Shown one piece after another: positions 31,001 to 60,251 of a DNA stretch of 64,000 nucleotides. Both the position numbers and the translations under genes were made by a program. The stretch covers positions 13,896,655-13,960,654 of the forward strand of contig NC_134033.1 in the NCBI RefSeq assembly GCF_964204645.1, in the 5' to 3' direction. Position 1 is the first letter of the stretch. Every line of letters begins with the position of its first letter. The stretch comes from Tubulanus polymorphus. Lineage: Eukaryota > Animalia > Nemertea. Below the pieces are notes generated by a model. That model had not been told where the DNA came from, ran no database searches, and worked only from the letters and a program-made list of their open reading frames with translations.

Positions 31001-31260
31001 TTAACAGACGAGGAGGTGAGAATTTTGATACTAACTCGTTTCAATTCTAACACTGTAAAATTATCATTTTCGAAATGGTTCAGATTCTATAACATCCTGA
31101 CTAAAACTTTGTTCGTATTTTTCTTCTTGGAATATTGTAGATGGCGACACTCGACGAAGCTTCCGCCATAACAGATGTCCCGTACCCGTATAGTTTAGGA
31201 GTTGCGCTCAAACAAATGAGAACGGCGAAATTTGATTCGAAAATGTTCGCCAAAAAATAA
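28016..31260 (+). CDS. Aldo-keto reductase, YajO-like, copy 3 (~370 aa); exons 28016-28108, 28195-28343, 28462-28615, 29211-29384, 29802-29899, 30203-30387, 30876-31015, 31141-31260
   Basis: Same exon structure, open frame, tetrad intact ([16 protein letters not shown]). Confidence 0.93.
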
Positions 31261-36300: not shown

Positions 36301-37092
36301 TCTGCCACGAAAATATATACCTATGCAGTAGACTCTACCTCTGTAGCGTTTGGACTGTGAATAAAAGTTTTACGAAGTCGAATTTATGATAAGGGAAATT
36401 GGATCAGTTGAAGGGCTATTTTGATACGGTTAGATACGTCTGAGTACTACCTACTACCTACTAACCTTCGAATGTGTAAAATATATGTATTCAAATTGTT
36501 AGATGTTTTGTCTTGTTGACATTCTAGTGATATTATATTTCCAACCTATAACGAATTCTACCTCTAACTTAGCGACTAGCAGTTTTCAGTTTGAGTCAAT
36601 TTTGGAATCCTAGTCCTTTATAAGAAATTTCCATTATTTAGCAGATCAACTCCGGCCCTGTATATAATTATGCTAACGAATTGTAATACTGTGTTTCAAT
36701 AAGGTAAAACCGTGGCGCAAGTGTCTTTAAGGTGGCTACTGCAGAAACCAGCGGTAACTTCCGTTATCATCGGGGTCAGGACGCTGGCCCAGTTAGAAGA
36801 CAATATGGGCGCGTCTGCTGGCTGGAGATTAACAGACGAGGAGGTGAGAATTTTGATACTAACTCGTTTCAATTCAAACAGCTTGATTTTCGAAATGGTT
36901 CACGCCAAGGATTCTGTATTATCATCGTTGACATTAAACTATGTTCGTATTTTTCTTCTTGGAATATTGTAGATGGCGACACTCGACGAAGCTTCCGCCA
37001 TTACGGACGTCCCGTACCCGTATAGTTTCGTATTCGCGCTCAAAAAAATGAGAACGGCGAAATTTGATTCGAAAATGTTCGCAAAAAAATAA
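33394..37092 (+). CDS. Aldo-keto reductase, YajO-like, copy 4 (~370 aa); exons 33394-33486, 33575-33723, 33867-34020, 34407-34580, 34988-35085, 35751-35935, 36704-36843, 36973-37092
   Basis: Recent duplicate of copy 3 (introns still alignable), open frame. Confidence 0.93.
35955..36195. mobile_element. Fold-back Penelope-like insertion with hammerhead-ribozyme motif, in intron 6 of AKR copy 4
   Basis: ~200-nt imperfect palindrome 35958-36158; ACGAACATTA duplicated at 35945 and 36196; absent from the paralogous intron at ~30400; minus strand 36060-36020 reads TTC-CTGGAGA-TGGCTA-TTAGGATC-TAGTC-GAAAC-GTT-GAA. Confidence 0.7.
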
Positions 37093-38815: not shown

Positions 38816-41800
38816 ATGTGGCTAGGTCACTTCTTTTTAGCGGTTCAGATCGTCTGGGTCTACAACAATATAGCACCAGTCACAAGCGCAAGTAAGTCGA
38901 TTAAAAATATAAGGAGTCTACCGTAGAACTGTTGAACTATAGGATCCGAGATTTTATCTCGGAGTAAAAAAATGTTCCGATAATTCAGCTAGTATCCCAC
39001 AGAAAACATTCCGAAAATTTCGAATGATATGTCATGGCAAAGGGACGTTTAATATCTATTGAGAAAGTTAAGGAATATCTCATAGATATGTTCATTTTTC
39101 TAATACCTGACAGAAAATTCAAAAAGAAGTACTTTAATTACTGATAAAATGAGATTATGTCATCTTGCACGTGATAGAATTTCTACTGATTGAGTGTTTG
39201 GTAGTCTCTGAGAACGAACTACGCCGTCCGAACATCAACGTCGCTTTTTCTCCGTTCGTAGGTTCGTGCGCGCAAGGCTGGAAAAGTTATGGCAGAAACT
39301 GCTTTTTGTTCAGGACCACGAAAGTGACGTGGAACGAAGCGGCGATTATATGTCTGAAAGGCAAAGCACGACTAGCCGAAGATAAGGACAGTTTGACCCA
39401 CGCTTTTTTAAGATGTAAGTGGAAACGTTTAGCTAACACGACTGACCTTCTAGCACTAACTAATGCTAACACTTTCAGATAATACGTTTTACGCCATAGT
39501 TCTGTGGGTTAAGTGAATTGTATTTCAAAATAAACTACTATTTTGAAACAAAATTGTCGAGTTTGTCACGAGCGGTTAATGCGTATTTACATCGGCAAAT
39601 CTACCAAATTAATCGATGTCCGTCTTAAAACACTCAATTCACCGAAGTAAAATTAGAGCCTGGAAGTACTTTGCAACTAGACTGTTCGAAGATATTTGTT
39701 CAGGGCATTGGCCGGATAATAGCTTCTTGTACATTCGAATAAAGGCTGTCCTCAGTATGAGTTTTTCTCGGTGGTCTCCTCCCTTCTTCTTTTGACCTGA
39801 AACCGAGCTCCTGTCACATATTAACTATAACGAAAGGCCGATTATTTATTCAATAATAAAACACTCATAAAAATTTCGTCGATTGCTCATATTTTTTAAG
39901 CTGTAAAAACCGTTATATCAACGTTTATATGCATTGATACCTATTATGCGTTATTTTAGGGGTTCTGTGCGAGTCGATGTGCACTACGTCATCAATATTG
40001 GCATGTCAAAATAACAATTACGATTTTGAATTTGGCGTGTTTATTTGAGAGGATATGCAAAATAATCGGGGCTAGACTGCATTGCCGGTCAATTCAATTC
40101 ATTCATTCAATTCAAAAATTATCGATCCTCTATATTACATAAATCTTATGTTATATTATTTATTGTCGACAATAAATAATAATAACATGTGCTTTTTGCC
40201 AATGCGCCAGTAAACTTTCAAGTTAGTTTTTTTTATATATCCTATATGCAAGATTTTAGATTCATCTTTTCTTATTTCATCAAACGCTTGCAGCGAAAAT
40301 GAAAATCAAATCGCATATCGGTTTAAACGACCTCAGAAATACGAAAACACCACGACGAAGCTGGTACTGGCACGTGAGTACTAACCCGATAAACGAGACG
40401 GATAAGGCGCTTGTACGAAATTGAATCTGATTCGGTTTAGCTAAATCCTATTCGATGTTGGAAAACGTAAGGATTAGTAAATCGAATCGTTTTTTCGTAA
40501 ATGAGTCGAGTCAATTTATCAATTTAAAGGTCGCGATTCGAAAGAAAATGGGTGTCGATGGTGAACGAATTATTGATAGATGATGGTCTGCGATAGATGT
40601 CTTTAGCCCGCGGTCGAAGAGGACGCCATGTTGGATTTCACTGACCAAATCGCCACTAACTTGCTCGCCGAGCAAGTTAGTTGATTTAATAAATCAATTT
40701 ACTGAACCGCGTCCATAAACGAGTTGATTTACCAAATCGGATTCACTAAACCGCGTGCCGTAAACGTGAAAACTAAATCCATTTACAAAGATTCAGTTTC
40801 GTAAAAGCGCCTATATTACCCGTACCTGCTTATTTGAAGACAGTACGAGCTTGCATCAAGCATCCTCTCCCGGCAGGGATTCGAACCTGATGGCGTCGAG
40901 ATTGCCACGGTTCGTACTATGGCTGAGTGTAGCGATGTCATCAGGTTCGAATCCCTGCCGAGGGAGGATGGCAATGGAGCTACACTAGTAGCGAAAGCTC
41001 GTGCGTCAATTTAACTATAAGTCACACCTATAAAGTACTACTCGTCTCGTTGCATTTATTCTGCACCAGGATCACGGTTCCACTACGACACGGGCCAATC
41101 TTGACTCGAGCTTGATCCGGGCCAAATTGTTTCCCAAATTGTTTCCGTGTGATCGCGGCTTTAAACCCATGAAATGCATATATTTGTTCTTTTCTTGTTT
41201 TGAATAAACATTAACGTATTCATGGTATATATCTTTTCAGCATCATTTTCGAAACTGGCAGAAAAATGAACCGAACTATCGCAATGAGCAATGCATGGCG
41301 GTCATAGCCCGTTGGTATGATTCCAGATGCAACATCCCGAGACCGTCGATTTGTGAATATTCAAAATCAAGTAAATGCAACTTTCTACGCTGTGCTTCAG
41401 CGGGTTCGAGGCCCCTGAATTCTAAAATTGAAATCTTCATTTTGGAGATTCGATTTCGTATCGTCATGGAAATCTCCTGTCTTTTTTCTCAAACTGCACA
41501 TATCCCTTAATTTCTTACCAGAGATGAAAGCCAGTCGATGTTATCCGGGCTGGTTGAGTTGGGGCGATAGTTGCTACGCCCTACAGAGAACAAAGCGCAA
41601 TCATCACCAGGCAAATCTACACTGTCTTCGAATGAGAAGTCATTTGGTGGCGATAGAGAGTGCAGCGGAAGACAAGTATCTCAGCGGTACGTCGTGTTAA
41701 TCACGTGTCACATCGAAATGCACGCGCGATAAAGAAGAAATACGATATATACATCAAAAGGAATAAATGAATTTTTGTTTTGTATTTGTATAGGTATAAG

Positions 41801-44800
41801 ACGTAGACTTCCCGGCGGAATATTTTGGACGGGTCTACACGAGCAATTTAAGACTGGTTACTGGAAATGGGCGGTATGAAACGCTCGCCCGTTCGTTCGT
41901 TCGTTCGTTCGTTCGTTCGTTCGTTCGTTCGTTGGAGTCAGTAACGTACAGTTCTTTAACATGGATTTCTTTCTCTAATTCAAGGGACCGAGTTTCGTTA
42001 ACTGGAACAGAGGTGAACCAAACAACGTCAGAAACGAGGACTGCACGCACGTGTACAATAACGGCAAATGGAATGATATCAGCTGTAATGCGCGTCAACG
42101 ATTCGTCTGCAAATCCAGAAAAAGTAAGTTCACGCTGCTATTCCTAACTAGCTTCGCGACGCTTTTATACGGATTTCGACGACGAACAAAAAAAAACTAA
42201 TACGAAAATCATCTTATTTCGAAGTTGAGGGTAAATGTCCCGGCGGTTGGAAGTCGTATAGACATTCGTGTTACAAGTACTACCCGCAGGCTAAGAATTT
42301 TGCAGGCGCGCGTCAAACATGCAGAAGTCAAAAGAGCTACCTGGCCTGGATCGACGACATGGATGAAAATAATTACATTCGGCGTAAGTTGATAAAACGC
42401 TACATATCCGTGTTGTGACGGTAATATAGAGAAAATCCCACAATAATGACGAAAAACGAAGTCCGAAAATGTTTCCTAGAGTTGGTAGTTTATTCTCCGG
42501 AGTTGTTTAAGATGTTCACCTTGGCTTACCTTTTTTGCAAATAGGACTCGGAGGAGGAACTATATTCATCGGATTGAATGACATGCGACGAGAAAGTTAT
42601 TTCACTTGGGATGTAAGTTGCAAAAGAAAACTGTAAATTCTACTCATAGAAGGAGCTATTGTTTAGGAATTGAAGTGATCGAGAATTTTTCCAGGGTCCG
42701 GAGAGTGGGAGTTTATACTGGGCTCCCGGGAATCCAAACAACAAGAAAACGGACGAATGTACCGGTATGGACATGAGAGGAAAATGGACGAACTACAATT
42801 GCAAGAGCAAAAAGGAAGGATTCATCTGCCAAAGAGGCATCGGAGGTAAGCTTCCGCCTTTACCAACTTGTTTATTATGATAAATATGACTATGATAAAT
42901 ACATTGCGTCGCCGTGATCGGAATCTTTTAGAGTTTGACTGATTGTAAAGGAACTTAATCTTTGAATGTTACTTAACCCAAGACCCCCTAAATCTAAGAT
43001 CTTCTATTCCTGATCCGGAATAAAGTAGCCCGAGATATTCATTTCATATCCATGGGATGTCAGGGGATTTCATGAATATGAAGTTATTAAACAACGGCCA
43101 ATCTGATTGACTGTCAATCTCCGAGCGTTTTCTCTAGGGCAGGGGTTTTGATGCTGTCAGGTCCCTGCACAGAGAGCTGATGTGTCTCTAGGGCAGGGGT
43201 TTCGATGTTGTCACGTCCCTGCACAGAGAGCTGATGTGTCTCTAGGGTAGGGGTTTCGATGTTGTCACGTCCCTGCACAGAGAGCTGATGTGTCTCTAGG
43301 GCAGGGGTTTCGATGTTGTCAGGTCCCTGCACAGAGCTGATGTGTCTCTAGAGCAGGGGTTTTGATGTTGTCAGGTCCCTGCACACAGAGCTGATGTGTC
43401 TCTAGAGCAGGGGTTTTGATGTTGTCAGGTCCCTGCACAGAGCTGATGTGTCTCTAGAGCAGGGGTTTCGATGTTGTCAGGTCCCTGCACAGAGCTGATG
43501 TGTCTCTAGGGCAGGGGTTTCGATGTTGTCAGGTCCCTGCACAGAGCTGATGTGTCTCTAGAGCAGGGGTTTTGATGTTGTCAGGTCCCTGCACAGAGCT
43601 GATGTGTCTCTAGAGCAGGGGTTTCGATGTTGTCAGGTCCCTGCACAGAGCTGATGGGTTTCGTATGGCAGGGGGTTTGGTCTGACAGAGTCTAACATGA
43701 TGTCATCAGGTTTGGAGGGAGGGTGTGTCTACTAGGACAGGGGTTTGTACTGTGTCAAGAGTCTAATGCCACCAAATCCTCACGGGAGGATGGGTCTATT
43801 AGGGCAGATATTTGTATGGTGGCAAAGTCCCTCGACGTCATCAGGTTCGAGTCCGACTTGTGGGGGAGGGTGTGCTATAAATACGTCTGAACCCTCGATC
43901 GTAGTTAACTTTAGTTTTAGTTAAATATGGTATCACTTTCAGTTAGTGGTCCGGCGATAGGGGGAAGTTCAGGAGGATCAAGATGTAAGTAGAAGGCGAT
44001 GCCATACTTGAAAGAAAATCACATCAATAACAAGTCAACATATTAAATGAATATATCTATTCAATAATTTTATATAAAAGTCATCCTAACTCTATAGGAT
44101 TGTGCATAAATGCCCGAATGATCTGGACCAATCTAATCTAGAACCAGTTCTGCTTCGAGTTTTGACTCGTAAAGAATGAATCTCGATTTTTGTTTGTTTG
44201 TGCGATTGATTTTAGCTTCTGGGGGAACTCGAATGAGGAGGACAGGGTGTTTTCTGGACAAAGCGAAGCGAGATCTGCCGAGTGGTTTTAAGAGCAATAA
44301 TAAGATGACTCCAATAATGTGCGTCCGTCATTGCGCTAAAAACGGTGAGTATACCATAACTGTTCATATAGTTCAAGATTAGAAACGTTAGAAAACGGAT
44401 TGAGATATTACCAATATCAGATACGTTTATTCTCATTCATAAATTGTTTTTGTTTAATAGGATTTAAATACGCTGGAGTACAGTACGCGCGTCAATGTTT
44501 CTGTGGTAATAAATATGGTAGATACGGCGGTAGACCGAACAGAGAATGTAATATGAAATGTGGCGGAGACAAATCAAAAACATGTGGCGGCACCTGGCGG
44601 AATAATATATACAGAATTATTGGTAAGAAATTGTCATTTTTATTACTGATCAGTCGCTTAGATAACTCATCGTCTTTGGGCGATTCAAAGTGGATTTTCC
44701 TATTATTAACGTCCATTTCGACTTTCATCACTGGCCAATTTCAGGAATAAATCACGTATTCAAGCTTTTCTAACGGCTTCTGTTTTGAATTTATTTCTAG

Positions 44801-47800
44801 TGCGGCGGCGAGGACGGGGTGAGTAGAAGGATTTGTTTGGACGTTCTATTAACATTTCTAGAATATCGCTGTTTCATCCATAGACAAAAAATAATATCTA
44901 TATTGTCTTGTAGGAAGAACTCGAATGAAGAAGACAGGATGTTTTCTGGACAAATCAAAGCGAGATCTACCGAGTCTACATATCCATAACAATAAGATGA
45001 CTCCAAGACTGTGCGTCCATCATTGCGCTAGAGGCGGTCTGTAATATTTGTCATAACTGTCCACGTACACATCAGAAAATGAAATATCTTTCCTCAATAA
45101 AAGTTAAACACTTTTTAAAAAATGAAATGGTTTTATAGGATTTAAATACGCGGGAGTACAGTATGGGCGTCATTGTTTCTGCGGTAATAAATATGGTAGA
45201 TACGGCGGTAGACCGAACAGAGAATGTAACATGAAATGCAGCGGAGACAAATCAAAAATATGTGGCGCTGCTGGCAGAAGTAACATATACCGAATTATTG
45301 GTAAGAATTCATCTTTTTGATTAAGAATTGGCCGATTTGCTGCCGTGATTCATTGTCGTTTGATCATAATTCAGAGTCGATTTTATACAAATATTGATAT
45401 TGATCTTGATTAACATTTTAACTTTCATCAACGGCTAAACATTCGCCACGTTTTCATATAACTCTATAACGGCTTCTGTTTTGAATTTATTTCTAGTGCG
45501 GCGGCGGTCACGGGGTGAGTAGAAGGATTTGTTTGGACGATGTATAAACATTTTTAGAATTTCGCTGTTTGTTACTTACTCGACAAAATTTATTAATGTT
45601 GTTTTTTTATATTGTATTATATTTATATATTGTAATGAATTAACATTTCTAGAATATCGCTGTTTCATCCATCGACAAAATATCTATGATGTCTTTTAGG
45701 AAGAACCCGAATGAAGAAGACAGGATGTTTTCTGGACAAAGCAAAGCGAGATCTACCGAGTCTACATATCCATAACAATAAGATGACTCCAAGACTGTGC
45801 GTCCATCATTGCGCTAGAGGCGGTCTGTAATATTTGTCATAACTGTTCGCGTACACATTTATAACATCAGAAAATGAAATATCTTTCCTCAATAAAAGTT
45901 AAACACTTTTTAAAAAATGAAATGGTTTTATAGGATTTAAATACGCGGGAGTACAGTATGGGCGTCATTGTTTCTGTGGTAATAAATATGGTAGATACGG
46001 CGGTAGACCGAACAGAGAATGTAATATGAAATGCAGCGGAGACAAATCAAAAATATGTGGCGCTGCTGGCAGAAGTAACATATACCGAATCATTGGTAAG
46101 AATTCATCTTTTTGATTAAGAATTGGCCGATTTGCTGCCGTGATTCATTGTCGTTTGGTCATAATTCAGAGTCGATTTTATACAAATATTGATATTGATC
46201 TTGATTAACATTTTAACTTTCATCAACGGCTAAACATTCGCCACGTTTTCATATAACTCTATAACGGCTTCTGTTTTGAATTTGTTTCTAGTGCGGCGTC
46301 GAGGACGGGGTGAGTAAAAGGATTTTTTTTAGGACGTTCTATTAATATTCCTAGAATATCGCTGTTTAATCCATCGACAAAAATATCTATATTGTCTTGT
46401 AGGAAGAACTCGAATGAGGAGGACAGGGTGTTTTCTGGACAAACCGAAGCGAGATCTGCCGAGTGGTTTTAAGAGCAATAATAAGATGACTCCAATAATG
46501 TGCGTCCGTCATTGCGCTAAAAACGGTGAGTATACCATAACTGTTCATATAGTTCAATATTAGAAACGTTAGAAAACGGATTGAGATATTACCAATATCA
46601 GATACGTATATTCTCTATCATAATTTTTTTGTTTAATAGGATTTAAATACGCGGGAGTACAGTACGCGCGTCAATGTTTCTGTGGTAATAAATATGGTAG
46701 ATACGGCGGTAGACCGAACAGAGAATGTAATATGAAATGTGGCGGAGACAAATCAAAAACATGTGGCGGCACCTGGCGGAATAATATATACAGAATTATT
46801 GGTAAGAAATTGTCATTTTGATTACTGATCAGTCGCTTAGATAACTCATCGTCTTTGGGCGATTCAAAGTGGATTTTACTAATATTAACGTCCATTTCGA
46901 CTTTCATCAACGGCCAATTTCAGGAATAAATCACGTATTCAAGCTTTTCTAACGGCTTCCGTTTTGAATTTATTTCTAGTGCGGCGGCGAGGACGGGGTG
47001 AGTAGAAGGATTTGTTTGGACGTTCTATTAACATTTCTAGAATATCGCCATTTAATCCATCGAAAAAAAATAATATCTATATTGTCTTGTAGGAAGAACT
47101 CGAATGAGGAAGACAGGATGTTTTCTGGACAAAGCAAAGCGAGATCTACCGAGTCTACATATCCATAACAATAAGATGACTCCAAGACTGTGCGTCCATC
47201 ATTGCGCTAGAGGCGGTCTGTAATATTTGTCATAACTGTTCACGTACACATCAGAAAATGAAATGTCTTTCCTCAATAATAGTTAAACACTTTTTAAAAA
47301 ATGAAATGGTTTTATAGGATTTAAATACGCCGGAGTACAGTATGGGCGTCATTGTTTCTGCGGTAATAAATATGGTAGATACGGCGGTAGACCGAACAGA
47401 GAATGTAACATGAAATGCAGCGGAGACAAATCAAAAATATGTGGCGCTGCTGGCAGAAGTAACATATACAGAATTATTGGTAAGAATTCATCTTTTTGAT
47501 TAAGAATTGGCCGATTTGCTGCCGTGATTCATTGTCGTTTGACCATAATTCAGAGTCGATTTTATACAAATATTGATAATGATCTTGATTAACATTTTAA
47601 CTTTCATCAACGGCTAAATATTCGCCACGTTTTCATATAACTCTATAACGGCTTCTGTTTTGAATTTATTTCTAGTGCGGCGTCGAGGACGGGGTGAGTA
47701 AAAGGATTTTTTAGGACGTTCTATTAATATTTCTAGAATATCGCTGTTTAATCCATCGACAAAAATATCTATACTCTCTTCTAGGAAGAACTCGAATGAA

Positions 47801-50800
47801 GAAGACAGGATGTTTTCTGGACAAACCGAAGCGAGATCTGCCGAGTGGTTTTAAGAGCAATAATAAGATGACTCCAATAATGTGCGTCCGTCATTGCGCT
47901 AAAAACGGTGAGTATACCCGCAGGTGTGGTGGGTCTGTAAGGGACACTCAATCAAAAAATCTAACGAAATTTACAAACCAAATAAACAACAGGGACAATC
48001 CCTATTTTAAGATCAAAAAAAAAAAAAAAAAAAAAAAAAAAACGATGAGTATACCATAACTGTTCATATAGTTCAATATTAGAAACGTTAGAAAGCGAAA
48101 TGAGATATTTACAATATCAGATACGTTTATTCTCTATCATAATTTTTTTGTTTAATAGGATTTAAATACGCGGGAGTACAGTACGCGCGTGAATGTTTCT
48201 GTGGTAATAAATATGGTAGATACGGCGGTAGACCGAACAGAGAATGTAATATGAAATGCAGCGGAGACAAATCAAAAACATGTGGCGGCACCTGGCGGAA
48301 TAATATATACAGAATTATTGGTAAGAAATTGTCATTTTTATTACTGATCAATAAGGCATACAGAATAGCTGTTCCTCATTTGCATGCATATTTGCTGTGC
48401 AAATTTCATCCAGCATCAAGATGGCCACCAGGCAGCCTCTTCTGTATAATCCCGATATTCTCTTCCGGATACGAGCACAAGTCAATTTCACTTCGCAATT
48501 CCAATTCAAAATATTTATTTTCAGTACGGAGGGGACGCGGACGCGGACGCAAATCTTGTAAGTAAAACGATTTCATCGAATAAACAAGAACATACTTTAT
48601 TAACTGTGATTACGTTACGTTTTTCTCCTGGGTTAAATAGCGAAGGGTTGGAGACGGTTCGGTAGGAAATTGTACCTATTCGACACGTCTAAATCAGAAA
48701 GCTGGATCTCCGCAGCCGATTCGTGCGCGAAGATGGGAGCCAAACTTGCCGCACCACAGAACCTATACGAACAACACTTCATCAACCGTAAGTATAGATA
48801 GAACAAGTATGATGATTATCATAATCATTCGCGCATAAATTTTATATTTGAAAATAATATAATGGGAACAAGGTGATTTCATTCAGGTTGATGGGCACCA
48901 CAGGAGTAGATACAAACTTCTATTCCTTAAACGTGGCCACGGTGCCCTTGGAAATCGCACACGCATCATCACCCAAATACACACACACACGACCTAATCG
49001 TATCACACTCAGAACCACCTTTTCATTCCGGCTTTCGTCGTTTCAGTGAACATACTATGTTTGTTCTCTTTTTCACAAAGACAATGCTTATGCAAGTATT
49101 ACCCCTGGTTTTTTTAACCACAGATTATCATCGAAATAGCACATAGAAGATCATTGACCGTATTAACACCTTTCTTCAATCTTCCTCAGAAAATAATAAA
49201 GCGTCTTCATCCTCAAAGACTAGGCTACGGTATTTGTATATCCTTACAAATACATAATTTCATTAGGACATATGTAATTTTGAAACACGTGTTGAATACA
49301 TTAGTATTGAAGAAATGTCACAAACATTTACATCAACATAAATGAATGATGTATGAATATTAACCGTTGACCCATCGTCAGAATAACCAAATACAATCTA
49401 TTGGAATCGCTAACCATTTGATAAGTCTTAAATGCGTACTTTTTATTCAACAAAAAAAAAAAACGTCGCAGTCTCCATATATTTCACATGATGTTCATGG
49501 TCGATCAAATCACTGAATATTTGATACGTTTACAATGGAACATGTTTATCATCGCGGTGACCATTATTGACGTCGTATTTAGATATATGGGGGGCATTTC
49601 TGAAAAATATCGATTACGCCTATACGTCTAAAGTCAGTATTCGTTGAAATAAAAAGATCAACCCCGTTTTAACTGTAGTCGTTGTGAATACGCTGAAAAA
49701 GAAAATGCTTCATATCGGGCTTTACGACCTCTCATCAGATCCCCGCCGTAGAAGCTGGCGCTGGCACGTGAGTACTTCATCGATTACCAACAAAATTCCC
49801 GATAAAAGACCTAGGCCCTATGGTCCTATCCGTAATTTCTCCGGCGTTATTTTTTTTTCGTCAGGCAACCTATCAAAATTGGAAAGCTCCTAAGATGTAT
49901 AAATACGTGAAAGGTCGTCATTGTACGACTATAAACCGATCCGGAAGATGGATGAAAGAACCGTGTATGTGGAAACGACAAACTATCTGCGAATACGACT
50001 ACAAGCGTAAGTCGAGCGTCTCACGAAAACATGACCAAAACTGATATTTCATACAACATACCCATGGTCAACACATTAAAATACGGATTTGATATATCAC
50101 ATATTTGTCTTATTCATCTTATATCTAAGCTTCGAAAAGGTAACATTTCATAGAAAATCTCTCTTATATTTTGCCAGTGAGGGGTAACAGCGGATGTCCT
50201 CGAGGCTGGAAGAAATCCGGCAGGTTTTGTTGGTTCCATATCAGACAGAAATACAATCTACCGGTTGCGTTCGCTTACTGTAACAAACGCAACTCGCGAC
50301 CGGTGTGGTTAGAAGACGCCCGCAAAGAAGCCGCCCTAAAACGTAAGTTTTCACCCGATTGAAAACAGGTGATAATAATAATAAATTAATAATAAATTTA
50401 TTTCTACAATAAAATTACAACATGTCATAAAGAGATATACAAATATGAAATGTTTTAATATAATGTGGAGGAGATTAGATGAAGCCAATGAAGGCTTATA
50501 AAATCTCTAATCCCCTAGCATACAGCGATTCACTCAACTCATACACACATGCAGTCATACACCTTCACCCAACATGCACCCACACACGTAGTCACTCAGG
50601 CGGTCAATCACACTATCTTTCATTCACTCTTACAATCTGGTAACAATTTCAAAACTGCAACTTAACAAGTTAGATAACTCATACGTCATCCACACGTGAA
50701 ATTCATCAAAATTTACGTTTTTCCAGGGGCGTTCAAGGGTCATTTCTGGATCGGAAATTTCCAGTTGAAAAAGCATTTCTGGAGATGGACGGTAAGTACA

Positions 50801-53800
50801 TGGTCTAATTCTAGAATTCCGATGGAGTCGGGTCGGGTATCTCTCCCAACTCGGGACTTCAGTCCCAGTGGGCTATTGCGTTTGAAGTTTTCGAAAGGAT
50901 GAATATTTGATAGATGATTTTAACCTTCGCAGGGTGGCAAGTTTCAATTATGGAACCCTGGAGAACCGAACAACTGGGGTGGCAAAGAGGACTGTACTTA
51001 CTTCACCATGAATAAACACAGAGGCTGGAATGATATACATTGCAATCGGCGATTCCATTCCATCTGCAAGAAAGCTAGAGGTAATTCCTTCATTATACTG
51101 TCATCTGAACAGGTCCTAAATCAACCGAGTGGATAATCATAAATTCGAACGAAAACGAACGCGCTTTTCGGAAACTCTTGCTTTTCGCAAACGACCTCCC
51201 CATAAATCTAGCTCAGTTCATTGATAATTCACGAGATTCTTCTCGCTTCAGTGGATAATAAGGGATGCCCTCGTCATTGGAAAAAGAGAGGCCGTTTTTG
51301 CTACCTATTTGTTCATCAAGCTCGCACATGGGTGCAATCCCATCAACACTGCAAAAAGTATCTATCGTACCTGGTTTCTGTAGACGACATCAAGGAACAT
51401 CGATATCTTGGAAGTAAGTGTCCGCCCAGCACCGAGATGTTCTCTTGTTGCTTAATGCAATCTGTTACAGTCGAATAAGTTCATTTTGATTCTTATATTT
51501 CAGAGTTGATAAAAACCAACACTTGGATTGGATATAACGACCGACTAGCAGAAGGGTTGTTCTCTTGGGCCGTTAGTAGTTTCATTCACATCTGAACTAA
51601 TTAGAAATAACTGGAAATCACTGTCAGTCTCAGACGTGTGTTTTTTGTTTCAAGGGTTTCGATGATGTGGATATCTGGTGGTTGCGAGGTGGATACCCGA
51701 AAGCGGACGCGAGTTTACGATGCGTCGGAACGTACAAAGGCCGTTGGGTTAACTACGAATGTGAACGAACGAAGAAACCAAAAATTTGCGAAAAATGGGC
51801 AGGTACGAGTTTGTAAGGGGATATGCCTTGGTAACGTGGACAGATACGATTATTCATTATATCAGTATTAATCCCTCAAAAAACTTAGTTTTGATGGCCA
51901 ATTTTCTTTTTCTCTAAAAATTACGATGTAGGTTTGCGAGTTTACAAAAATGCTAGACCCATGTTCAAAAAGAAGAAACGATCTAAGGGTAAACCGGATA
52001 AGCCGGATAAAAAGCCACCAGGTACGTCATGAAACAGCGTTCTAATCTGTATCTAATCGCATAACCGAAAAGTAGCAAAAACGAAATGATTGGAGATGAA
52101 ATAAGCGAGTTTGAAAAAGAAGCACAACTGCCAAATCTATCCGGCTATTTCATCCCCGGTTTTGTTGATTTAGAACTATGTCAGTATATGATTTACTTTG
52201 ATAGTATTCAATCTAATATTATATTACTAATAATGATAATAATATGATAATGTATTCAATATGGCTGTAAATCATATTCATTTTTTTCTCTATTAAAATT
52301 CTCAAATCTCTTGATTGCACCAGTTGAATACACTGAAAGGGTGTCAAATTCTTTCATCCACCTGCCCCGACCCACCATATCCTCCCATTCAAATTGTACG
52401 TTTTCTGTTTGTAAACATCGTATTGATTTTTCATTTATCACTTTTCACAAATCTCGATAACGTCGTCTTGATTTTGAATTTATTAAATCTTGCAAATTGC
52501 TTTAGTTTCGCTTTATGCCGGAATAATCCATTCATTTTCAGCCATTTTTGCACTAATTCCTCCCACCTGCATTTTCAGCCATTTTTGCACTAATTCCTCC
52601 CACCTGAAATGAACTTATGATGATTTTGCATTTTGTTATTCAAAAAAGTTGCAACTGAATTTTGAACGGGACCCTTTCAGTGTATTTCTACGTACGTGTG
52701 TATATCACGCGAATTTTCAAAACAAAAAACATTAACCCCTTAGCTTCCATTTGGATGAATACAACAAAATATGATTGAAATGCACTGAAGGGGTTAATGG
52801 ATTTTCTTTATGTAAACGGTATTTTGGTCAAAAAATCAGAAAAATGCCTTTTCTCGATGCATATTTTTCATCTTTGCTCAATTTGAATTTCGCTCACGAA
52901 TTAATGTCCGTTTTGTTTGGTTTCGTTTTTCTCCTAACGTTCTGATTGCAGTGGATAGATGCAAAAAGGGATGGACCAAATACGGTAATCGTTGTTACTT
53001 GTTTAAGAAGTCGAGTCAAATGACGTGGAACGGCGCGCGACGATTCTGCGACAAATCGTCTGCCCACCTACCATACATCCGGTCCGCGTCTGAAAACGAT
53101 TTCGTTCGAGGTTCGTATCGTCGCTTTCATCGTCATCATCATTATCATCACGGCTTAGATAGACCGATTAGTATGTCCGTATAGCCCGACTGTTTTTCTT
53201 CATAACATTATATTTATAATTATGTCCATTAATGTAATCATGTCGCTCTGAGGATCCGCTAGGGCCTCTAGTCACGATAAAAACGCGGGAACTGAGGTTC
53301 GAATTCAAACGCAACTTCAGCGATCGATGATCCACTTTGGGTGACCGAGTAACTACTAGCGAACCCGGTGGATCCTCACCTGCCATAAGTAAAATCCTCG
53401 ATTGCCACAGGAGGTAGGTTTCTAATTGCGTTGTTCTATTTGCAGCTCGAATGCGAACGGCTGGACGTAAAATCCATCTGGGATTGACGTCTTGGGCCGT
53501 CCGTCACGTGAAAACGTCGAAAAAGAAACGTCATATGTTTTACTGGCAGGTGCGCATTCATATTCCAAACAGTAAACCTCGCCCGACTAACATGGCCAAC
53601 TCGAATCTTTTGACTCAACTAAACTAAAACTAAACTCTTTTCGGACTCCTTAACCAATTTTGGAGCCTGTCATGTCCCAGTTTGTCAGGCGAGGTTTTTG
53701 GAGTTTGTCTACTGGGATTCGGTATTTAATATAAACTTTATAGAAAATATCAATCAACTCAATGAAATATGATAAGTAGATCTGAAGAAGATGGATATGA

Positions 53801-56800
53801 TTTCTCATTCAGGGAGCCACATTTTGGAAGTTTAGTTCTCGGAATCAGTATTTGCCCGTATATAACACCGGTTACGACTGTGGAATGTTGACGTATTATC
53901 GCGGAAGGCGACTTTTTGCCAATTCGAAGTGTTCGAAAAGAAACAGATTCATATGTGAGAAAACTAGTAAAAGTAAGTAGAATGAACTGTTGTATTAGTG
54001 TGATTCTCACCATTGTTGTTCTATGTGTGTTTCTCTTCCACCGGTGTTATTTCCACTCGTAATTCTTTCCATTAGAAAACCGTGTTATGTTAGAATCCGT
54101 GTTATCTATATGTCCATATTCCTTTATTTCTCCTAATCCGGTATTTACATTTGCAGTCTTTTTTCAAAGATTACGTTCGCCCAATTTTTTCTCTAAATCA
54201 ATTCTAATTACAACATTCACGTAATCAACTCAAACTTATCAACTTCATCTGCATTTTAGCAAACCCTCCACACCTTTTTATCTTCTTACTTCCACCGAAC
54301 CATGTATGGTTTGTTCATGCACCTACAGGCGTCACAATCTTCTAAATATAACTTTTGCCAGAGTTTACTGCCACGCCATATCTAGGTTTCCCTTCGTGCA
54401 CTCGCACGTTAGACGTCTATATACATAACTTCTTTCTATAGTTTAAGTGTGATGTAAGCATCCACTAGTAATTAGAGTAAATACGTTCCGCCACACTAAA
54501 AGAAACCTTGACCTAAGGCTAAAACTGATACCTCGATTCGGCAATGAAATTTGTAATCAGTTCATAACTGCCGGATCTGGTATCATAAGCTTGATGACAA
54601 TTTCTAAAAACATTGATGCACACGATATAGACAGTGGGCCGGCTCTACGTTTTCATATTATACACCAAAGATGAAGGAATGTTAAATGAAGAACAAATTG
54701 CTTATACAAATGAAAACAGCCCTCAGAGAAGAGATAGATTTTACTTTGTTCTATCGGTCGTGATTTATTTGGTGAGTATCTTCCTTTTTTAGAATGTTCA
54801 GGTATTTGGAAAAATAAGGGTAGGGGCAGACGGACGTCCAGAAGGCGTTCTAGTAGAAGGACTGCTGGCCAGTGTTACCATTTTTCGACGGTCAGTTTGA
54901 ACTGGTATCAAGCCAGACAGTGGTGTATTAGTAAAGGCGGCTACCTGGCTAGCATCGAAACGCAAAGTGAATTTGACTACATAAGCGGTAAGTCAATTCG
55001 GCACCAAAACCAAGAATTCATCATCATAATGGAAGAAGTTGTCTCGATTTTGAGCAAATGCAATCTTACGCCAAAATTACTTTCTTTCCTGTTCAAGAAG
55101 TTTTTTTAATGAAATTTGATATCCTTTTCAATTCAATATCGTAGGAAGAGCTTTCAAGACACAGGCTTGGATGAGTTTAAACGATGTTGGTCAATTAGGT
55201 TTTTTCCGCTGGGAGGTGAGTCAACAACGGTTTGAAAAAATCTATGGTAGCAATGATTAACAAAAAATTAATTCATTTTGGTATTCATGACTTGTTTTGG
55301 AAAATATTAATCAAAATGATCAATAATAAGATTTGTCATTGTTTCCGTTCAGAAAGGAGCTACGTTTGTGAATTTTGCACGAGGAGAACCGAATAACGTC
55401 GGTAATGAAGATTGTATTATGGTTTACAAGCGTAACGGCCTGTGGAACGACGCGCGGTGCAGGTCGAACATGAAATACGGGTGTCAAAAACCGGCTACTG
55501 GTAAGTTGGTTTTTACACACACGTCTCCTCACGTGAGCCATTCAATTAAATGATCGGACCATTCAATGAAATGATCTCAGTGAGAGACTCATGATTCGTC
55601 AAATGATCATCCCAACCCGCACCTACATGAAGAGATGTTCGGTGAATTCTATTCTATCTATCTTTTGATATTTCGATTACAATTATAGGTAGGAGGTGCC
55701 CACGACGTTGGCGATATTTCAAGGGAAATTGTTACTATTTCCCGAGGAAGGCCGCGTCGTGGATTCGCGGTAAAGTCTCGTGCGGAACTATGCGCGCTAC
55801 GATGCTGATTGTACCCGACCGCACGACAAACAACTGGCTACGTAGTGAGTATATACTTCATCCTGTTTCCGGTCACACTATAACCGCATTCTAGACTTTT
55901 TTGATCATTTTGCAGAATTCTTCGGCGGAAATTATTGGATAGGACTGAACGATATTCGTTACGAAGGAAGTTTTCGCTGGCAAGTGAGTGTGGTCTCTTG
56001 ATATGTTCCAAATTACATATCGATTCGGTGTGTATATATATATATATAGTGTTATGATTTCTCATTATTTCCAGGGTGGTGATTTCATGTATACAAATTG
56101 GCACAGCGGTGAACCGAAGACGAAAAAACTTCAGCATGGTTGTACCATTATGATGTCGGATGGTAGTTGGCATCTGAAAGAGTGCAGCTCAACGGCAGGT
56201 GTCGTCTGTCAGATACAGGTACATTTACAGGGTAGTTAGACAATTACCGTCGCCAATTTTTCCTCTCATCTTAAATACCCAATTCATTAGCTGTATTTGG
56301 TTAATTTGGTAGGTTTGTGGCGGGATGGAGTGCATAAAGGAGATAAAAATCGGGAGGGAGAGAAGAGAGAGGCTGGGAGAGGGGATAATGGGACGTAGTA
56401 GGAGAGGGCGAAAAGCGAGATAGGGACAGGAGAGAGGGACAATCAGAATGGAAAGAAGGGAAATGGGCTGAGAGAGGGGAGTTTTTATAGTGAATGATTG
56501 CTGTAATACAACTACATGAATATCCACCAGGTGAATCCGGCGAAGCGCACGACTAAAAAACGAAAACCCGCAAAGAAGAAACGAAAGCGTAAACCGTTCA
56601 TTCCACCGAAACCGACTCTACGAACGACGCGTCGTCCTAGCACGAGAGCGCCGGTTACTACAGTTACTCCTCGCAAAATGAAAAAGTTCACGTTCGGTAA
56701 CACCGGTATGCAAGCTTGTATTCGATCGGATCATTTAACGGTTACTCAGACGAAAAATTCTCTTAACGATAATCTTCGATTATTTACTTACTCTTCGTAC

Positions 56801-56939
56801 GAAGTTAAGAACAGCGAAAATATAAGAAACATCCTGTGGTGCTCACGAGGTCACGGGAATGTTTCTAATATTGATAAGTTTATGTTTGTTTTTAGCCACT
56901 GTTCCCGTAACTAATCCACTTGATATATATGAGTTGTGA
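38816..56939 (+). CDS. Secreted multidomain lectin, ~1909 aa: signal peptide + 3 C-type lectin domains + 6 WSC domains + 6 C-type lectin domains + basic/Thr-rich tail. Exons: SP 38816-38891; CTL1 39262-39414,40294-40373,41241-41370; CTL2 41522-41686,41794-41873,41985-42123; CTL3 42225-42383,42545-42612,42695-42845; linker 43943-43984; WSC array 44216-48320; linker 48525-48557; CTL4 48641-48787,49679-49767,49865-50006; CTL5 50178-50342,50727-50791,50933-51080; CTL6 51252-51413,51504-51571,51655-51802; linker 51932-52021; CTL7 52952-53110,53446-53549,53813-53972; CTL8 54793-54987,55145-55215,55353-55500; CTL9 55689-55844,55916-55983,56075-56218; tail 56531-56705,56896-56939
   Basis: All exons are GT-AG bounded with compatible phases and sum to 5730 nt. 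N-terminus [25 protein letters not shown]; CTLD motifs (C.xGW...CY, WIGLND, EPN, WND, F/IC); WSC motifs (GCF.D...RDL, MT...C...C, YAGVQY...CFCG, C.M.C.GD...CGG). Last exon is the least certain; no transmembrane segment seen. Confidence 0.85.
40861..40970. repeat. Head-to-head pair of the SINE-like B-box motif forming a hairpin (intron of lectin gene)
   Basis: CATCCTCTCCCGGCAGGGATTCGAACCTGATGGCGTCG vs CGATGTCATCAGGTTCGAATCCCTGCCGAGGGAGGATG. Confidence 0.8.
41890..41933. repeat. (CGTT)n microsatellite in an intron
   Basis: Directly visible. Confidence 0.95.
43128..43656. repeat. 52-54-bp minisatellite, ~10 copies, intronic
   Basis: TGTCTCTAG(G/A)GCAGGGGTTT(C/T)GATGTTGTCAGGTCCCTGCACAG(AG)AGCTGATG repeated head to tail. 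Confidence 0.95.
44216..48320 (+). repeat. Six tandem WSC-domain gene modules (~0.7 kb each). Exons: 44216-44344/44461-44622; 44914-45036/45139-45300; 45700-45822/45934-46095; 46403-46525/46640-46801; 47093-47215/47318-47479; 47785-47907/48159-48320; microexons 44801-44818, 45497-45514, 46292-46309, 46980-46997, 47676-47693
   Basis: Exons and introns are near-identical within two subtypes (A-B-B-A-B-A). Confidence 0.92.
47919..48037 (+). mobile_element. 5'-truncated poly(A) retroposed insertion with 18-bp target-site duplication
   Basis: AATAAA at 47981, A-run 48015-48042, flanked by AAAAACGGTGAGTATACC (47901-47918) and AAAAACGATGAGTATACC (48038-48055); absent in the paralogous introns of WSC1 and WSC4. 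Confidence 0.88.
52329..52684. mobile_element. MITE-like element with TA flanks, plus adjacent tiny TTAA-flanked element (52732-52797)
   Basis: TA-CACTGAAAGGGT ... ACCCTTTCAGTG-TA; internal 37-bp direct duplication; neighbour TTAA-CCCCTT ... AAGGGG-TTAA. Confidence 0.5.
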
Positions 56940-58988: not shown

Positions 58989-60251
58989 ATGAAGGTATCG
59001 TTTGCTGTAGCGTTTCTCACTGTGATGCTAGGCGTCTCTAACGCCTTTTCATTCATGCCTAGTAAGTTTCCTTTCGTAAGATTTTCTGCCTGAACAAATT
59101 AACTCAGTCCTCCCTAGAATGTGTAACGTGCTTTTCTTTAAAATCAATTAGGTTTTGGCGTCGGAGGCGGTGGGCTCCATGGCCTGTTGGGAGGCATATT
59201 TACAAAACTCGACAAAAAAGGTGGCAAAGGTGGCATGCCTAAATTCAGCGAGGCGGCAAAAGATAATCCATCACTGCAGCCGTTTTTTGGAGCTGAAAAA
59301 AAGAAAGACGGCCAACAAGGGCAAGCGACAAATGGGCAACAACAGGGCCAACAACAGGGCCAACAACAGGGCCAACAAGCACAACCAGGACAACCTGGAC
59401 AACAGAACCAACCTAACCAGCAAGCACAAGTCAATGGCCAGCCACAACAAGGCGTTCCCCAACCACAAGGGGCTCCAGCACCAGGTGGCCAAATGGGGGG
59501 AGCTAAAGCACCTGCTGGCCGAGGATATCCCCCACCTCAAATGGCTGGAGTTCCTCCAGGCCGAGGCTATCCCCCACCTCAAATGGCTGGAGCTCCTCCA
59601 GGCCGAGGCTATCCCCCACCTCAAATGGGTGCAGCCCAAGCACCTCCCGGCCAAGGTTATCCCCCACCTCAAATGGCTGGAGCTCCTCCAGGCCGAGGCT
59701 ATCCCCCACCTCAAATGGCTGGAGCTCCTCCAGGCCGAGGCTATCCCCCACCTCAAATGGCTGGAACTCCTCCAGGCCGAGGCTATCCCCCACCTCAAAT
59801 GGCTGGAGCTCCTCCAGGCCGAGGCTATCCCCCACCTCAAATGGCTGGAGCTCCTCCAGGCCGAGGCTATCCCCCACCTCAAATGGCTGGAGCTCCTCCA
59901 GGTCGAGGTTATCCCCCACCTCAAATGGCTGGAGCTCCTCCAGGTCGAGGCTATCCCCCACCTCAAATGGCTGGAGCTCCTCCAGGCCGAGGCTATCCCC
60001 CACCTCAAATGGGTCATGGATACCCTCCGGCCCAGGGATACCCTCCTCAAACCCAGGGATACCCTCCTCAAGCCCAAGGATACCCCATTCAGGCTCAAGG
60101 ATACCCTCCCGCTCAGGGCTACCCACATCAAGCTCAGGGATACCCTCCTCAAGCCCAAGGATACCCTCCTCAAGCTCAAGGATACCCTCCTCAAGCCCAA
60201 GGATACCCTCATCAAGCCCAAGGATACCCTCCTCAAGCTCAAATGGGCTAA
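58989..60251 (+). CDS. Secreted Gly/Pro/Gln/Tyr-rich repetitive protein (~390 aa); exons 58989-59061, 59152-60251
   Basis: Signal peptide MKVSFAVAFLTVMLGVSNA spliced (phase 1) into the 59187-60251 frame: Gln-rich block, 12 x GYPPPQM-type repeats (mostly 14-aa AGAPPGRGYPPPQM), 11 x (Q)GYP-type hexa/heptads. Confidence 0.88.

Follow-up and report, generated by a model that had tools for sequence, protein, structure and literature searches.

The window analysed here is a stretch of 64,000 nucleotides from Tubulanus polymorphus (NC_134033.1). It contains a predicted gene of 42 exons on the + strand (38816-56914, approximately 18.1 kb), assembled from stop-free segments and an enumeration of splice sites, with a predicted product of approximately 1,880 residues. 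Every exon border carries AG/GT and the phase scheme is regular, with all 41 junctions preserving the frame in consistent phases across approximately 5.6 kb of coding sequence without a stop or frameshift. The exon-by-exon model, together with domain and motif content, bore out the order proposed in an earlier reading of the letters alone (the sequence-only reading): a signal peptide, three C-type lectin domains (CTLDs), six WSC domains, three CTLDs, a linker, three further CTLDs and a basic tail. Each CTLD is encoded by three exons of phases 1-1, 1-0 and 0-1 and each WSC domain by two exons of phases 1-1 and 1-1; every domain is therefore a phase-1 cassette. The CTLDs are typed as position 1, 2 or 3 within blocks of three, and the features of the locus are as follows.

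38816..38891, + strand: exon 1, start codon (first ATG of the open frame) and predicted signal peptide of 25 aa
39262-39414, 40294-40373 and 41241-41370, + strand: CTLD1, position-1 type (Lectin_C 23.5 bits, third exon)
41522-41686, 41794-41873 and 41985-42123, + strand: CTLD2, position-2 type, canonical site EPNN..NEDC..WND (Lectin_C 31.2 bits)
42225-42383, 42545-42612 (68 nt) and 42695-42845, + strand: CTLD3, position-3 type, NPN / WTN
44216-44344 and 44461-44622, + strand: WSC domain W1 (Pfam WSC, two exons, as for W2 to W6)
44914-45036 and 45139-45300, + strand: WSC domain W2
45700-45822 and 45934-46095, + strand: WSC domain W3
46403-46525 and 46640-46801, + strand: WSC domain W4
47093-47215 and 47318-47479, + strand: WSC domain W5
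47785-47907 and 48159-48320, + strand: WSC domain W6
48525..48557, + strand: possible 33-nt cassette exon, phase 1-1, for a basic linker between WSC6 and CTLD4 (acceptor TATTTATTTTCAG, donor GTAAGT)
48641-48787, 49679-49767 and 49865-50006, + strand: CTLD4, position-1 type, APK / WMK
50178-50342, 50727-50791 and 50933-51080, + strand: CTLD5, position-2 type, canonical site EPNN..KEDC..WND (Lectin_C 28.2 bits)
51252-51413, 51504-51571 (68 nt) and 51655-51802, + strand: CTLD6, position-3 type, YPK / WVN (third-exon acceptor placed at 51655 to match the third exons of the other CTLDs; alternative 51634)
51932..52021, + strand: basic linker exon, 30 aa with 13 K+R, phase 1-1 (codon-usage score 0.34, coding-like)
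52952-53110, 53446-53549 and 53813-53972, + strand: CTLD7, position-1 type, no sugar-site motifs (Lectin_C 31.6 bits, first exon)
54793-54987, 55145-55215 and 55353-55500, + strand: CTLD8, position-2 type, canonical site EPNN..NEDC..WND
55689-55844, 55916-55983 (68 nt) and 56075-56218, + strand: CTLD9, position-3 type, EPK / WHL
56531..56914, + strand: terminal exon, basic Pro/Thr-rich tail (stop-free frame of 135 codons, stop 56912-56914)
56827..56939, + strand: hydrophobic stretch in an alternative frame, ending ...DIYEL (stop 56937-56939)

Exon 1 is the only start and signal-peptide exon at the locus. Its phase-1 donor (CAA/GTAAGT) joins 39262, and the predicted signal peptide has a hydrophobic core and reads ...VTSA ahead of this junction. 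The 370-nt intron that separates it from CTLD1 holds no open coding segment, and a ricin-B (CysR) or FNII exon is accordingly absent from this interval. From 38.8 to 56.9 kb, every stop-free segment that looks coding belongs to a CTLD, WSC or basic exon, with nothing further that is coding-like in the introns or the 2-kb flanks. No CTLD or WSC exons occur elsewhere in the window, where the neighbouring genes are unrelated. One intact gene for one mosaic lectin, presumably secreted, is the best explanation of the locus and, on balance, we consider it probable.

Matches to Lectin_C (Pfam PF00059) were obtained on the exons of all nine CTLDs. Pfam matches were scored per exon; CTLD1c, 2c, 5c, 7a, 8a and 9c lie above the 22.6-bit cut-off and the other CTLDs fall below it because each domain is split across three exons. 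Six cysteines, as expected of an intact domain, are present in eight of the nine domains; CTLD4 has four, both cysteines of the N-terminal pair being gone, that is, a matched pair. A WIGL-like motif occurs in all nine, in the version HIGL/HLGL at CTLD1, 4 and 7. The principal calcium-site ligands that specify Man/GlcNAc/Fuc-type sugars are EPN, Glu and WND, with residue roles known from MBP-A. Reading the motifs of all nine domains, the full EPN...ED...WND site was found only in CTLD2, 5 and 8. CTLD1, 4 and 7 combine HIGL/HLGL with basic inserts, and CTLD3, 6 and 9 share a 68-nt middle exon, the motif IG(L/Y)ND..E..F.W and the altered sites NPN/WTN, YPK/WVN and EPK/WHL; on all three points the sequence-only reading had been correct. 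The site of CTLD1 (HIGL, basic insert RRSWYWH, EPN..NEQ..WYD) is degenerate, retaining EPN and Glu with WYD in place of WND. CTLD8 carries an Arg-rich insert of approximately 15 residues between its first two cysteines.

The EPNN...EDC...WND ligand set of CTLD2, 5 and 8 is that of the collectins and DC-SIGN-type CRDs (MBP, SP-D, CD209), and the solved chains nearest to the third exon of CTLD2 are Endo180 CTLD2, MBP, SP-D and DC-SIGN. Unlike in those proteins, there is no collagen or neck oligomerization region, and multivalency comes from tandem domains in a single chain. The motifs support one canonical Man/GlcNAc-type site per three-CTLD block, with sugar binding predicted.

All splits of the nine CTLDs into trios were ranked on summed identity, with identities and bootstraps summed from per-exon alignments. 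The partition (1,4,7)(2,5,8)(3,6,9) ranks first of 280, and each exon class, taken separately, supports it. Grouping by neighbourhood, (123)(456)(789), was ruled out, ranking 269 of 280 with 0% bootstrap. On the first exon alone the period-3 partition ranks 12-16 of 280; the motifs on which the period was originally noticed made no use of that exon. In neighbour-joining, the position clades reached bootstraps of 73, 47 and 53% and the neighbour groups 0%, with CTLD1 and 4 as sisters, CTLD2 and 5 as sisters, and CTLD7 and 8 falling outside these pairs. The top-ranked partition is thus the one anticipated beforehand (clades 1/4/7, 2/5/8 and 3/6/9), although two of its clades reach only about 50% bootstrap. 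The 68-nt middle exon is confined to position-3 CTLDs. Partition rank, bootstraps and exon classes together uphold the three-CTLD block as the evolutionary (duplication) unit, and support a putative origin of the nine CTLDs through triplication of that block. The block is also a candidate structural supradomain, as the sequence-only reading proposed. The likeness among CTLD2, 5 and 8 could in part stem from shared retention of an ancestral sugar site rather than from common descent. In the mannose receptor, most CTLDs do not bind sugar. Block copying of a differentiated three-domain unit suggests that CTLDs without a binding site are retained because they serve some purpose, for example in spacing, charge or contacts with other proteins.

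In all six WSC units (Pfam PF01822) the second exon scores 46-52 bits, and each unit contains eight cysteines, the count of an intact domain. Along the array they are near-identical copies of two types, in the order A-B-B-A-B-A, with a dS of 0.36 and a dN/dS of 0.33 between types A and B and a dS of 0.02-0.11 within one type. Introns, too, are 91-98% identical within a type; the exception is the one following W6, where the next domain is CTLD4 and not another WSC unit. By these divergences the six WSC domains arose through a recent amplification from two unit types, and their copy number may be polymorphic. The solved chain nearest to the WSC exons is the WSC domain of Kremen-1; in Kremen, the WSC domain works in protein complexes. 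Fungal WSC lectins bind beta-glucan (PMC9252488, citing Wawra 2019). The statement in the sequence-only reading that WSC domains bind glucan or chitin holds for such fungal lectins (PMC9252488) but was overstated for animal WSC domains, for which no report of glycan binding was found in the literature.

The predicted protein is strongly polycationic, as had been proposed, with a computed pI of approximately 11.4 and a net charge of approximately +280 (390 K+R versus 114 D+E). The folded domains carry this charge along with the linkers, and all 15 domains are basic, each with a pI of at least 9.9. Charge per residue is +0.112 for the CTLD exons here against a mean of +0.006 elsewhere in the genome, and +0.18 against +0.03 for the WSC exons. 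This gene-wide positive shift, which is not seen in paralogs, suggests that selection has acted on the binding of polyanions, and it ties lectins to the charge-based cohesion known in flatworm adhesives. In Macrostomum lignano, Mlig-ap1 is a giant secreted cohesive adhesive protein with extremely basic Lys/Arg regions and a C-type lectin domain, and its function is blocked by polyanions such as heparin (PMC6410801). However, the modules of Mlig-ap1 are vWD, TIL and EGF, its charge is located in low-complexity repeats, and its likeness to the present protein is one of functional analogy only.

Among known systems, the mannose-receptor family (MRC1, MRC2/Endo180, PLA2R, DEC-205, FcRY) is similar in being built as a chain of 8-10 CTLDs of which a minority have a functional EPN/WND site, and PLA2R, DEC-205, FcRY and MRC1 are the closest solved multi-CTLD chains by sequence. 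The present protein differs from this family in having no ricin-B or FNII domain, in lacking a convincing membrane-spanning segment or a tail for endocytosis, and in its inserted WSC domains, period-3 organization and extreme positive charge. Among extracellular proteins of metazoans, polycystin-1 and the sea-urchin REJ proteins also unite WSC and C-type lectin domains. Their LRR, PKD, REJ, GPS and 11-TM parts are absent here, where an accounting of the coding-like segments gave CTLD and WSC arrays only.

Within the same genome, CTLD and WSC exons are co-located on one strand and within a few kb at no fewer than four other loci (on C6, at 3.164, 7.886-7.890, 7.910-7.911 and 19.550-19.564 Mb). 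These loci share the domain combination, but they are seemingly much smaller, their exons are approximately neutral and no triad pattern was seen in them. Tandem multi-CTLD arrays are frequent in the genome; those on C6, C9, C2 and C7 showed no position-specific signature. The closest CTLD paralog (C10:13044341-13048298, 67% identical over one exon) was set aside as a relative in architecture, having two CTLDs, no WSC domain and no triad. A phmmer search with the WSC exons against 1.84 billion representatives returned a best identity of 62% and no self or orthologous match. None of the top 150 matches of the WSC search (BLAST and HMMs built from the exons of the window) contained a CTLD, and ten of the closest WSC-array proteins, when run through Pfam, were WSC-only or PAN+WSC. 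The tail and the first-exon segment of CTLD8 gave no protein match in a length-windowed search, in which a blank is uninformative for long proteins. The architecture had been described beforehand as unlike known mannose-receptor-family proteins. It is indeed not of the mannose-receptor type, but CTLD+WSC mosaics recur in the genome, and bivalve surveys include them as well (PMC10140915). The protein belongs, as an unusual case, to a widespread class of mosaic lectins and is not new in kind.

In each block the middle CTLD has kept a complete mannose/GlcNAc/fucose-type (EPN) site, and the two flanking CTLDs have lost the site and kept the fold. A pair of WSC domains was probably inserted as phase-1 cassettes and then recently amplified to six, and the whole protein has gained its extreme positive charge. 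Multivalent binding is the most likely mode of action, the ligands, cross-linking role and tissue being inferred. Three spaced calcium-dependent sugar sites could bind multivalently, with WSC-mediated glycan contacts probably added, and electrostatic binding would extend to polyanions, for example mucus glycans that are sulfated or acidic, or the surfaces of microbes. Within a secretion or on the body surface, the protein would cross-link or agglutinate such targets. A more specific version, which we regard as doubtful, casts the protein as a bulk structural "lectin glue" of mucus, tube or adhesive, in which sugar sites, WSC array and polycationic surface gel acidic glycans. The three-CTLD block, with a binding domain in the middle and a basic non-binding one on either side, would then be a previously unrecognised structural module, and variable WSC copy number would tune material properties. 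If true, a mucus, tube or adhesive component of this kind would be a useful model of glycan-based biological gels.

Alternatively, the protein may be a humoral immune pattern-recognition protein or agglutinin and not a structural protein that cross-links the worm's own mucus or matrix, its EPN sites binding microbial mannans or GlcNAc and its polycationic surface binding, and perhaps damaging, anionic envelopes. Antimicrobial proteins typically carry an extreme positive charge, and eosinophil major basic protein is a polycationic protein of the CTLD fold. The third exon of CTLD2, a position-2 domain, is nearest to the sugar-binding CTLDs of collectins and DC-SIGN. Invertebrate CTLD families are widely read as immune lectins (PMC10140915, PMC9835746). 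Mosaic proteins with several CTLDs occur commonly among invertebrates, and most are given the label "immune lectins". However, the young WSC amplification and the size of the protein are compatible with either role, and we hold the immune assignment to be a tentative one that is unlikely overall. If true, the protein would be an ordinary though extreme member of its class.

Returning to the single secreted lectin, its 3' end allows three possible endings: a stop directly after CTLD9 (56237-56239), translation on through the tail exon, or splicing from the donor at 56705. The codon score of the tail is 0.25 for 56531-56705, which is clearly coding-like, and -0.06 for the next 69 open codons, which is ambiguous; no paralog or homolog was found in searches with the tail segment. 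The third ending would give a type-I endocytic multi-CTLD membrane receptor, mannose-receptor-like, in which a basic Pro/Thr-rich stalk leads into a membrane-spanning helix and only a few cytoplasmic residues follow. From the phase-1 donor 56705/GTATGC the hydrophobic frame could be reached, and its stop at 56937-56939 is the end coordinate given in the sequence-only reading (56939). That coordinate thus belongs to a different frame; read in its own frame, the tail exon stops at 56912-56914. The nearest solved multi-CTLD chains, PLA2R, DEC-205, FcRY and MRC1, would also suit a receptor. Against this, the acceptor required at 56826 is weak and purine-rich, and the hydrophobic frame has an intron-like codon score of -0.28, equalled or exceeded by 31% of intron windows. 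No paralog of 56827-56939 was found, and the tail frame remains open for 69 codons beyond the putative donor. With the signal-peptide exon spliced straight onto CTLD1, there is also no ricin-B/FNII exon, and the 2.2 kb downstream contain no further coding segment resembling a transmembrane helix. The stretch 56827-56939 is probably non-coding, and a transmembrane ending was rejected as the main reading on account of its weak acceptor, intron-like codon usage, missing paralog and the open tail frame; a membrane receptor is quite unlikely. The earlier claim that the protein has no transmembrane segment stands only tentatively, with the sole candidate having a weak acceptor and intron-like codons and none found downstream.

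That the model fuses two or more adjacent genes, or represents an untranscribed or decaying array with no giant protein as such, is very unlikely: introns of 0.8-1.4 kb at several domain borders, the commonness of tandem multi-CTLD arrays in the genome and the failure to find a matching database protein would fit, but the locus has one start and signal-peptide exon, 41 in-frame junctions with no stop or frameshift in approximately 5.6 kb, no coding-like intron segment able to serve as an internal first exon and a dN/dS of 0.33 between WSC types A and B, and its positive charge, common to 15 domains and absent in paralogs, argues for one product under common selection.

Within the favoured single-gene model, the 33-nt candidate at 48525-48557 has a codon score that is coding-like over only 10 codons. 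It is a possible cassette exon, and both of its splice sites are strong.

The + strand stop-free segments were listed and all frame-keeping GT/AG pairs between adjacent segments enumerated, giving a single consistent model of the lectin gene (38816-56914, + strand, 42 exons). It encodes nine C-type lectin-like domains (CTLD1-9) in three triads, with six WSC domains (WSC1-6) between the first and second triads, a linker before the third and a basic tail. All 41 introns are of the GT...AG type and the exon frames contain no stop codons. Each CTLD (9/9) occupies three exons of phases 1-1, 1-0 and 0-1, and each WSC domain (6/6) two exons, both of phase 1-1. Given this regularity, all of the domains are phase-1 cassettes, an arrangement long associated with exon shuffling and tandem duplication. 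The remaining exons and neighbouring genes are as follows.

Exons of the lectin gene and neighbouring features
30884-31171 and 36712-36972: near-identical aldo/keto-reductase terminal exons (Pfam PF00248, E ~4e-10 each)
38816-38891, + strand: exon 1, first ATG and 25-residue signal-peptide-like sequence, judged by eye
48525-48557, + strand: putative extra exon of 33 nt with strong splice sites
51932-52021, + strand: basic linker exon of 90 nt
56531 (start), + strand: terminal exon of the lectin gene
59187-60251, + strand: repeat gene, 354-codon open frame starting MGGIFTKL, mostly GRGYPPPQMAGAPP and QGYPPQA repeats

The 33-nt exon may serve as an optional basic linker. A tblastn search of the whole window with all exon peptides found no CTLD or WSC exons on either strand beyond 39.1-56.3 kb, and no further coding-like segments were present in the introns or 2-kb flanks of the gene. 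G+C content is ~39% in the window (contig C9, 13896655-13960654), where genes are spliced and eukaryotic. The neighbours are unrelated to the lectin gene: upstream lie two tandem aldo/keto-reductase genes, a duplicate pair given their near-identical terminal exons, and downstream a G-Y-P-P-P-Q repeat gene, whose open frame has neither a signal peptide nor a Pfam match and is separate from the lectin gene.

Pfam Lectin_C matched exons from all nine CTLDs and Pfam WSC matched the WSC exons. Six cysteines are present in eight of the nine CTLDs and eight in each WSC domain; in CTLD4 the N-terminal long-form pair has gone as a whole, leaving four, which is what an intact fold would lead one to expect. 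Nearest to the third exon of CTLD2 are the sugar-binding CTLD2 of Endo180, MBP, SP-D, DC-SIGN and MRC1; the first exon of CTLD7 scores highest on PLA2R, FcRY, DEC-205 and MRC1, and Kremen-1 is the nearest match of the WSC exon. The motifs by which the sequence-only reading had divided the CTLDs into three types were all found in the exon translations. CTLD2, 5 and 8 contain EPNN...(N/K)EDC...WND; in MBP-A, the EPN...ED...WND residues supply every ligand of the principal calcium site, which is specific for Man/GlcNAc/Fuc. CTLD1, 4 and 7 carry HIGL/HLGL and basic inserts preceding W-x-W, and in CTLD3, 6 and 9 the middle exon is 68 nt long, IG(L/Y)ND..E..F.W is shared and the sites are degenerate. 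The reading needs correcting for CTLD1, which still keeps EPN and the Glu, with WYD replacing WND.

The nine copies of each CTLD exon class were aligned class by class and matches summed across classes, without joined sequence. Mean identity was 32% within triad positions and 26% across positions. Of the 280 possible divisions of the CTLDs into three trios, that by position, (1,4,7)(2,5,8)(3,6,9), ranked first, whereas that by neighbourhood, (1,2,3)(4,5,6)(7,8,9), ranked 269. The clusters predicted from the motifs were likewise recovered by neighbour-joining, in 73, 47 and 53% of 500 column resamplings, with neighbourhood clades in 0%. By single exon class, the position partition ranked 1 on the third exon and 1-4 on the second; the first exon, unused in the motif classification, still backs it at ranks 12-16. 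Because partition ranks, resampling and per-exon-class ranks favour grouping by position, we conclude from these comparisons that a differentiated three-CTLD block was duplicated twice. Within the tree, CTLD1 groups with CTLD4 and CTLD2 with CTLD5, leaving CTLD7 and CTLD8 outside, which fits an earlier split of the third triad. The likeness among CTLD2, 5 and 8 is partly a retained ancestral binding site, an objection that the derived characters of CTLD1, 4 and 7 and the exon length of CTLD3, 6 and 9 escape.

The WSC units are of two types in the order A-B-B-A-B-A. Between types, dS is ~0.36 and dN/dS ~0.33, indicating purifying selection; within type, dS is 0.02-0.11 and introns are 91-98% identical, the exception being the intron that follows WSC6, where the next domain is CTLD4 and not a further WSC unit. 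The two types, low within-type dS and near-identical introns therefore indicate an ancestral gene with two WSC domains and a very recent amplification to six, and copy number is possibly polymorphic or assembly-sensitive. No CTLD was found in the closest public-database WSC arrays (best 150 matches to the WSC exon), and the ten of these scanned with Pfam were WSC-only or PAN+WSC. The nearest named WSC relatives among the matches listed are spiralian (Macrostomum lignano).

Charge was counted exon by exon over the model, and the polycationic character proposed earlier was borne out. The mature protein (~1,884 aa) contains 390 K+R and 114 D+E, with a net charge of ~+281 and a pI of ~11.4, and pI is at least 9.9 in all 15 domains individually as well as in the linker and tail. 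Across the 268-Mb assembly (77 contigs), mean charge per residue is +0.112 for CTLD exons of the lectin gene versus +0.006 at other loci, and +0.18 versus +0.03 for WSC exons. Since CTLD and WSC exons elsewhere are near neutral, the strong positive charge is particular to this gene within the genome. A few WSC-array proteins of other spiralians are comparably cationic (database proteins P0001, P0038 from Macrostomum lignano, and P0115; net +127/705 aa, +154/1155 aa and +261/2072 aa, respectively), and polycationic WSC arrays may be a recurring theme.

Three endings of the gene were considered. The favoured one joins 56218 to 56531 by splicing and continues in an open frame of 135 codons, of which the first 58 codons are basic, Pro/Thr-rich and exon-like in codon usage (+0.25) and the other 69 ambiguous (-0.06). 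Another possible ending uses a donor at 56705 to enter a frame that contains a hydrophobic run of 17 residues and stops at 56939, the end given in the sequence-only reading; it requires a purine-rich acceptor and its codon usage is intron-like (-0.28). No paralogs were found for this frame or for the tail. Also possible is a stop six codons past CTLD9, at 56237-56239. Given the preference for the 56531 ending over the hydrophobic one, the protein probably has no transmembrane segment, as had been claimed.

The lectin falls outside the mannose-receptor family, lacking CysR, FNII and a convincing transmembrane segment, and is not polycystin-like. Its placement outside that family was therefore upheld, but CTLD+WSC mosaics are not unique to it: such architectures are listed in a bivalve survey (PMC10140915), and exons of both domain types share a strand, within a few kb of each other, at four or more other loci on contig 6 (C6; locus labels L021, L023, L025, L027 and L028), so that these mosaics form a small family in this genome. 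Multi-CTLD arrays are also frequent.

CTLD+WSC loci and long tandem CTLD-exon arrays (multi-CTLD genes or gene clusters) in the same genome
C6:3164281-3164763, + strand: CTLD+WSC
C6:7886632-7890438, - strand: CTLD+WSC
C6:7910012-7911290, - strand: CTLD+WSC
C6:19550354-19564536, - strand: CTLD+WSC
C6:5908723-5920986, - strand: CTLD array
C9:13546108-13555715, - strand: CTLD array
C2:3824236-3842438, + strand: CTLD array

One of the tandem CTLD arrays is on the lectin gene's own contig, just 340 kb upstream. Protein searches with the WSC exon, tail segment and CTLD8 first-exon segment found no orthologue. Triad periodicity, size and gene-wide positive charge are distinctive, and the protein is a triad-periodic, polycationic, WSC-bearing form of invertebrate mosaic C-type lectins.

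Given the putative signal peptide, disulfide-rich extracellular modules, three canonical EPN sites along a long chain, six WSC domains and extreme positive charge, the protein would bind glycans and polyanions multivalently. The earlier observation is confirmed and its interpretation supported in part. Among WSC domains, documented glycan binding is limited to fungal lectins (PMC9252488). A role in cross-linking the acidic mucus, tube material or adhesive that the animal itself secretes would fit, by analogy with flatworm Mlig-ap1, a Lys/Arg-rich, CTLD-bearing cohesive protein inhibited by heparin (PMC6410801). Agglutination of microbes would also fit.

Several introns contain repeated sequence. 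The 1.37-kb intron separating CTLD3 from WSC1 includes a 52-bp tandem repeat (43131-43674; 10.3 copies, 95% matches). The intron inside WSC6 measures 251 nt and those inside WSC1-5 102-116 nt; the run of 28 A in the WSC6 intron (48015-48042) looks like a recent insertion with a terminal poly-A tail, possibly a retroposon. A similar element occurs in two introns (40770-41011 and 43696-43921), with ...DVIRFES... strings common to the translations and, in the copy at 40.8-41.0 kb, an open frame on both strands; the element probably belongs to a dispersed SINE- or MITE-like repeat.
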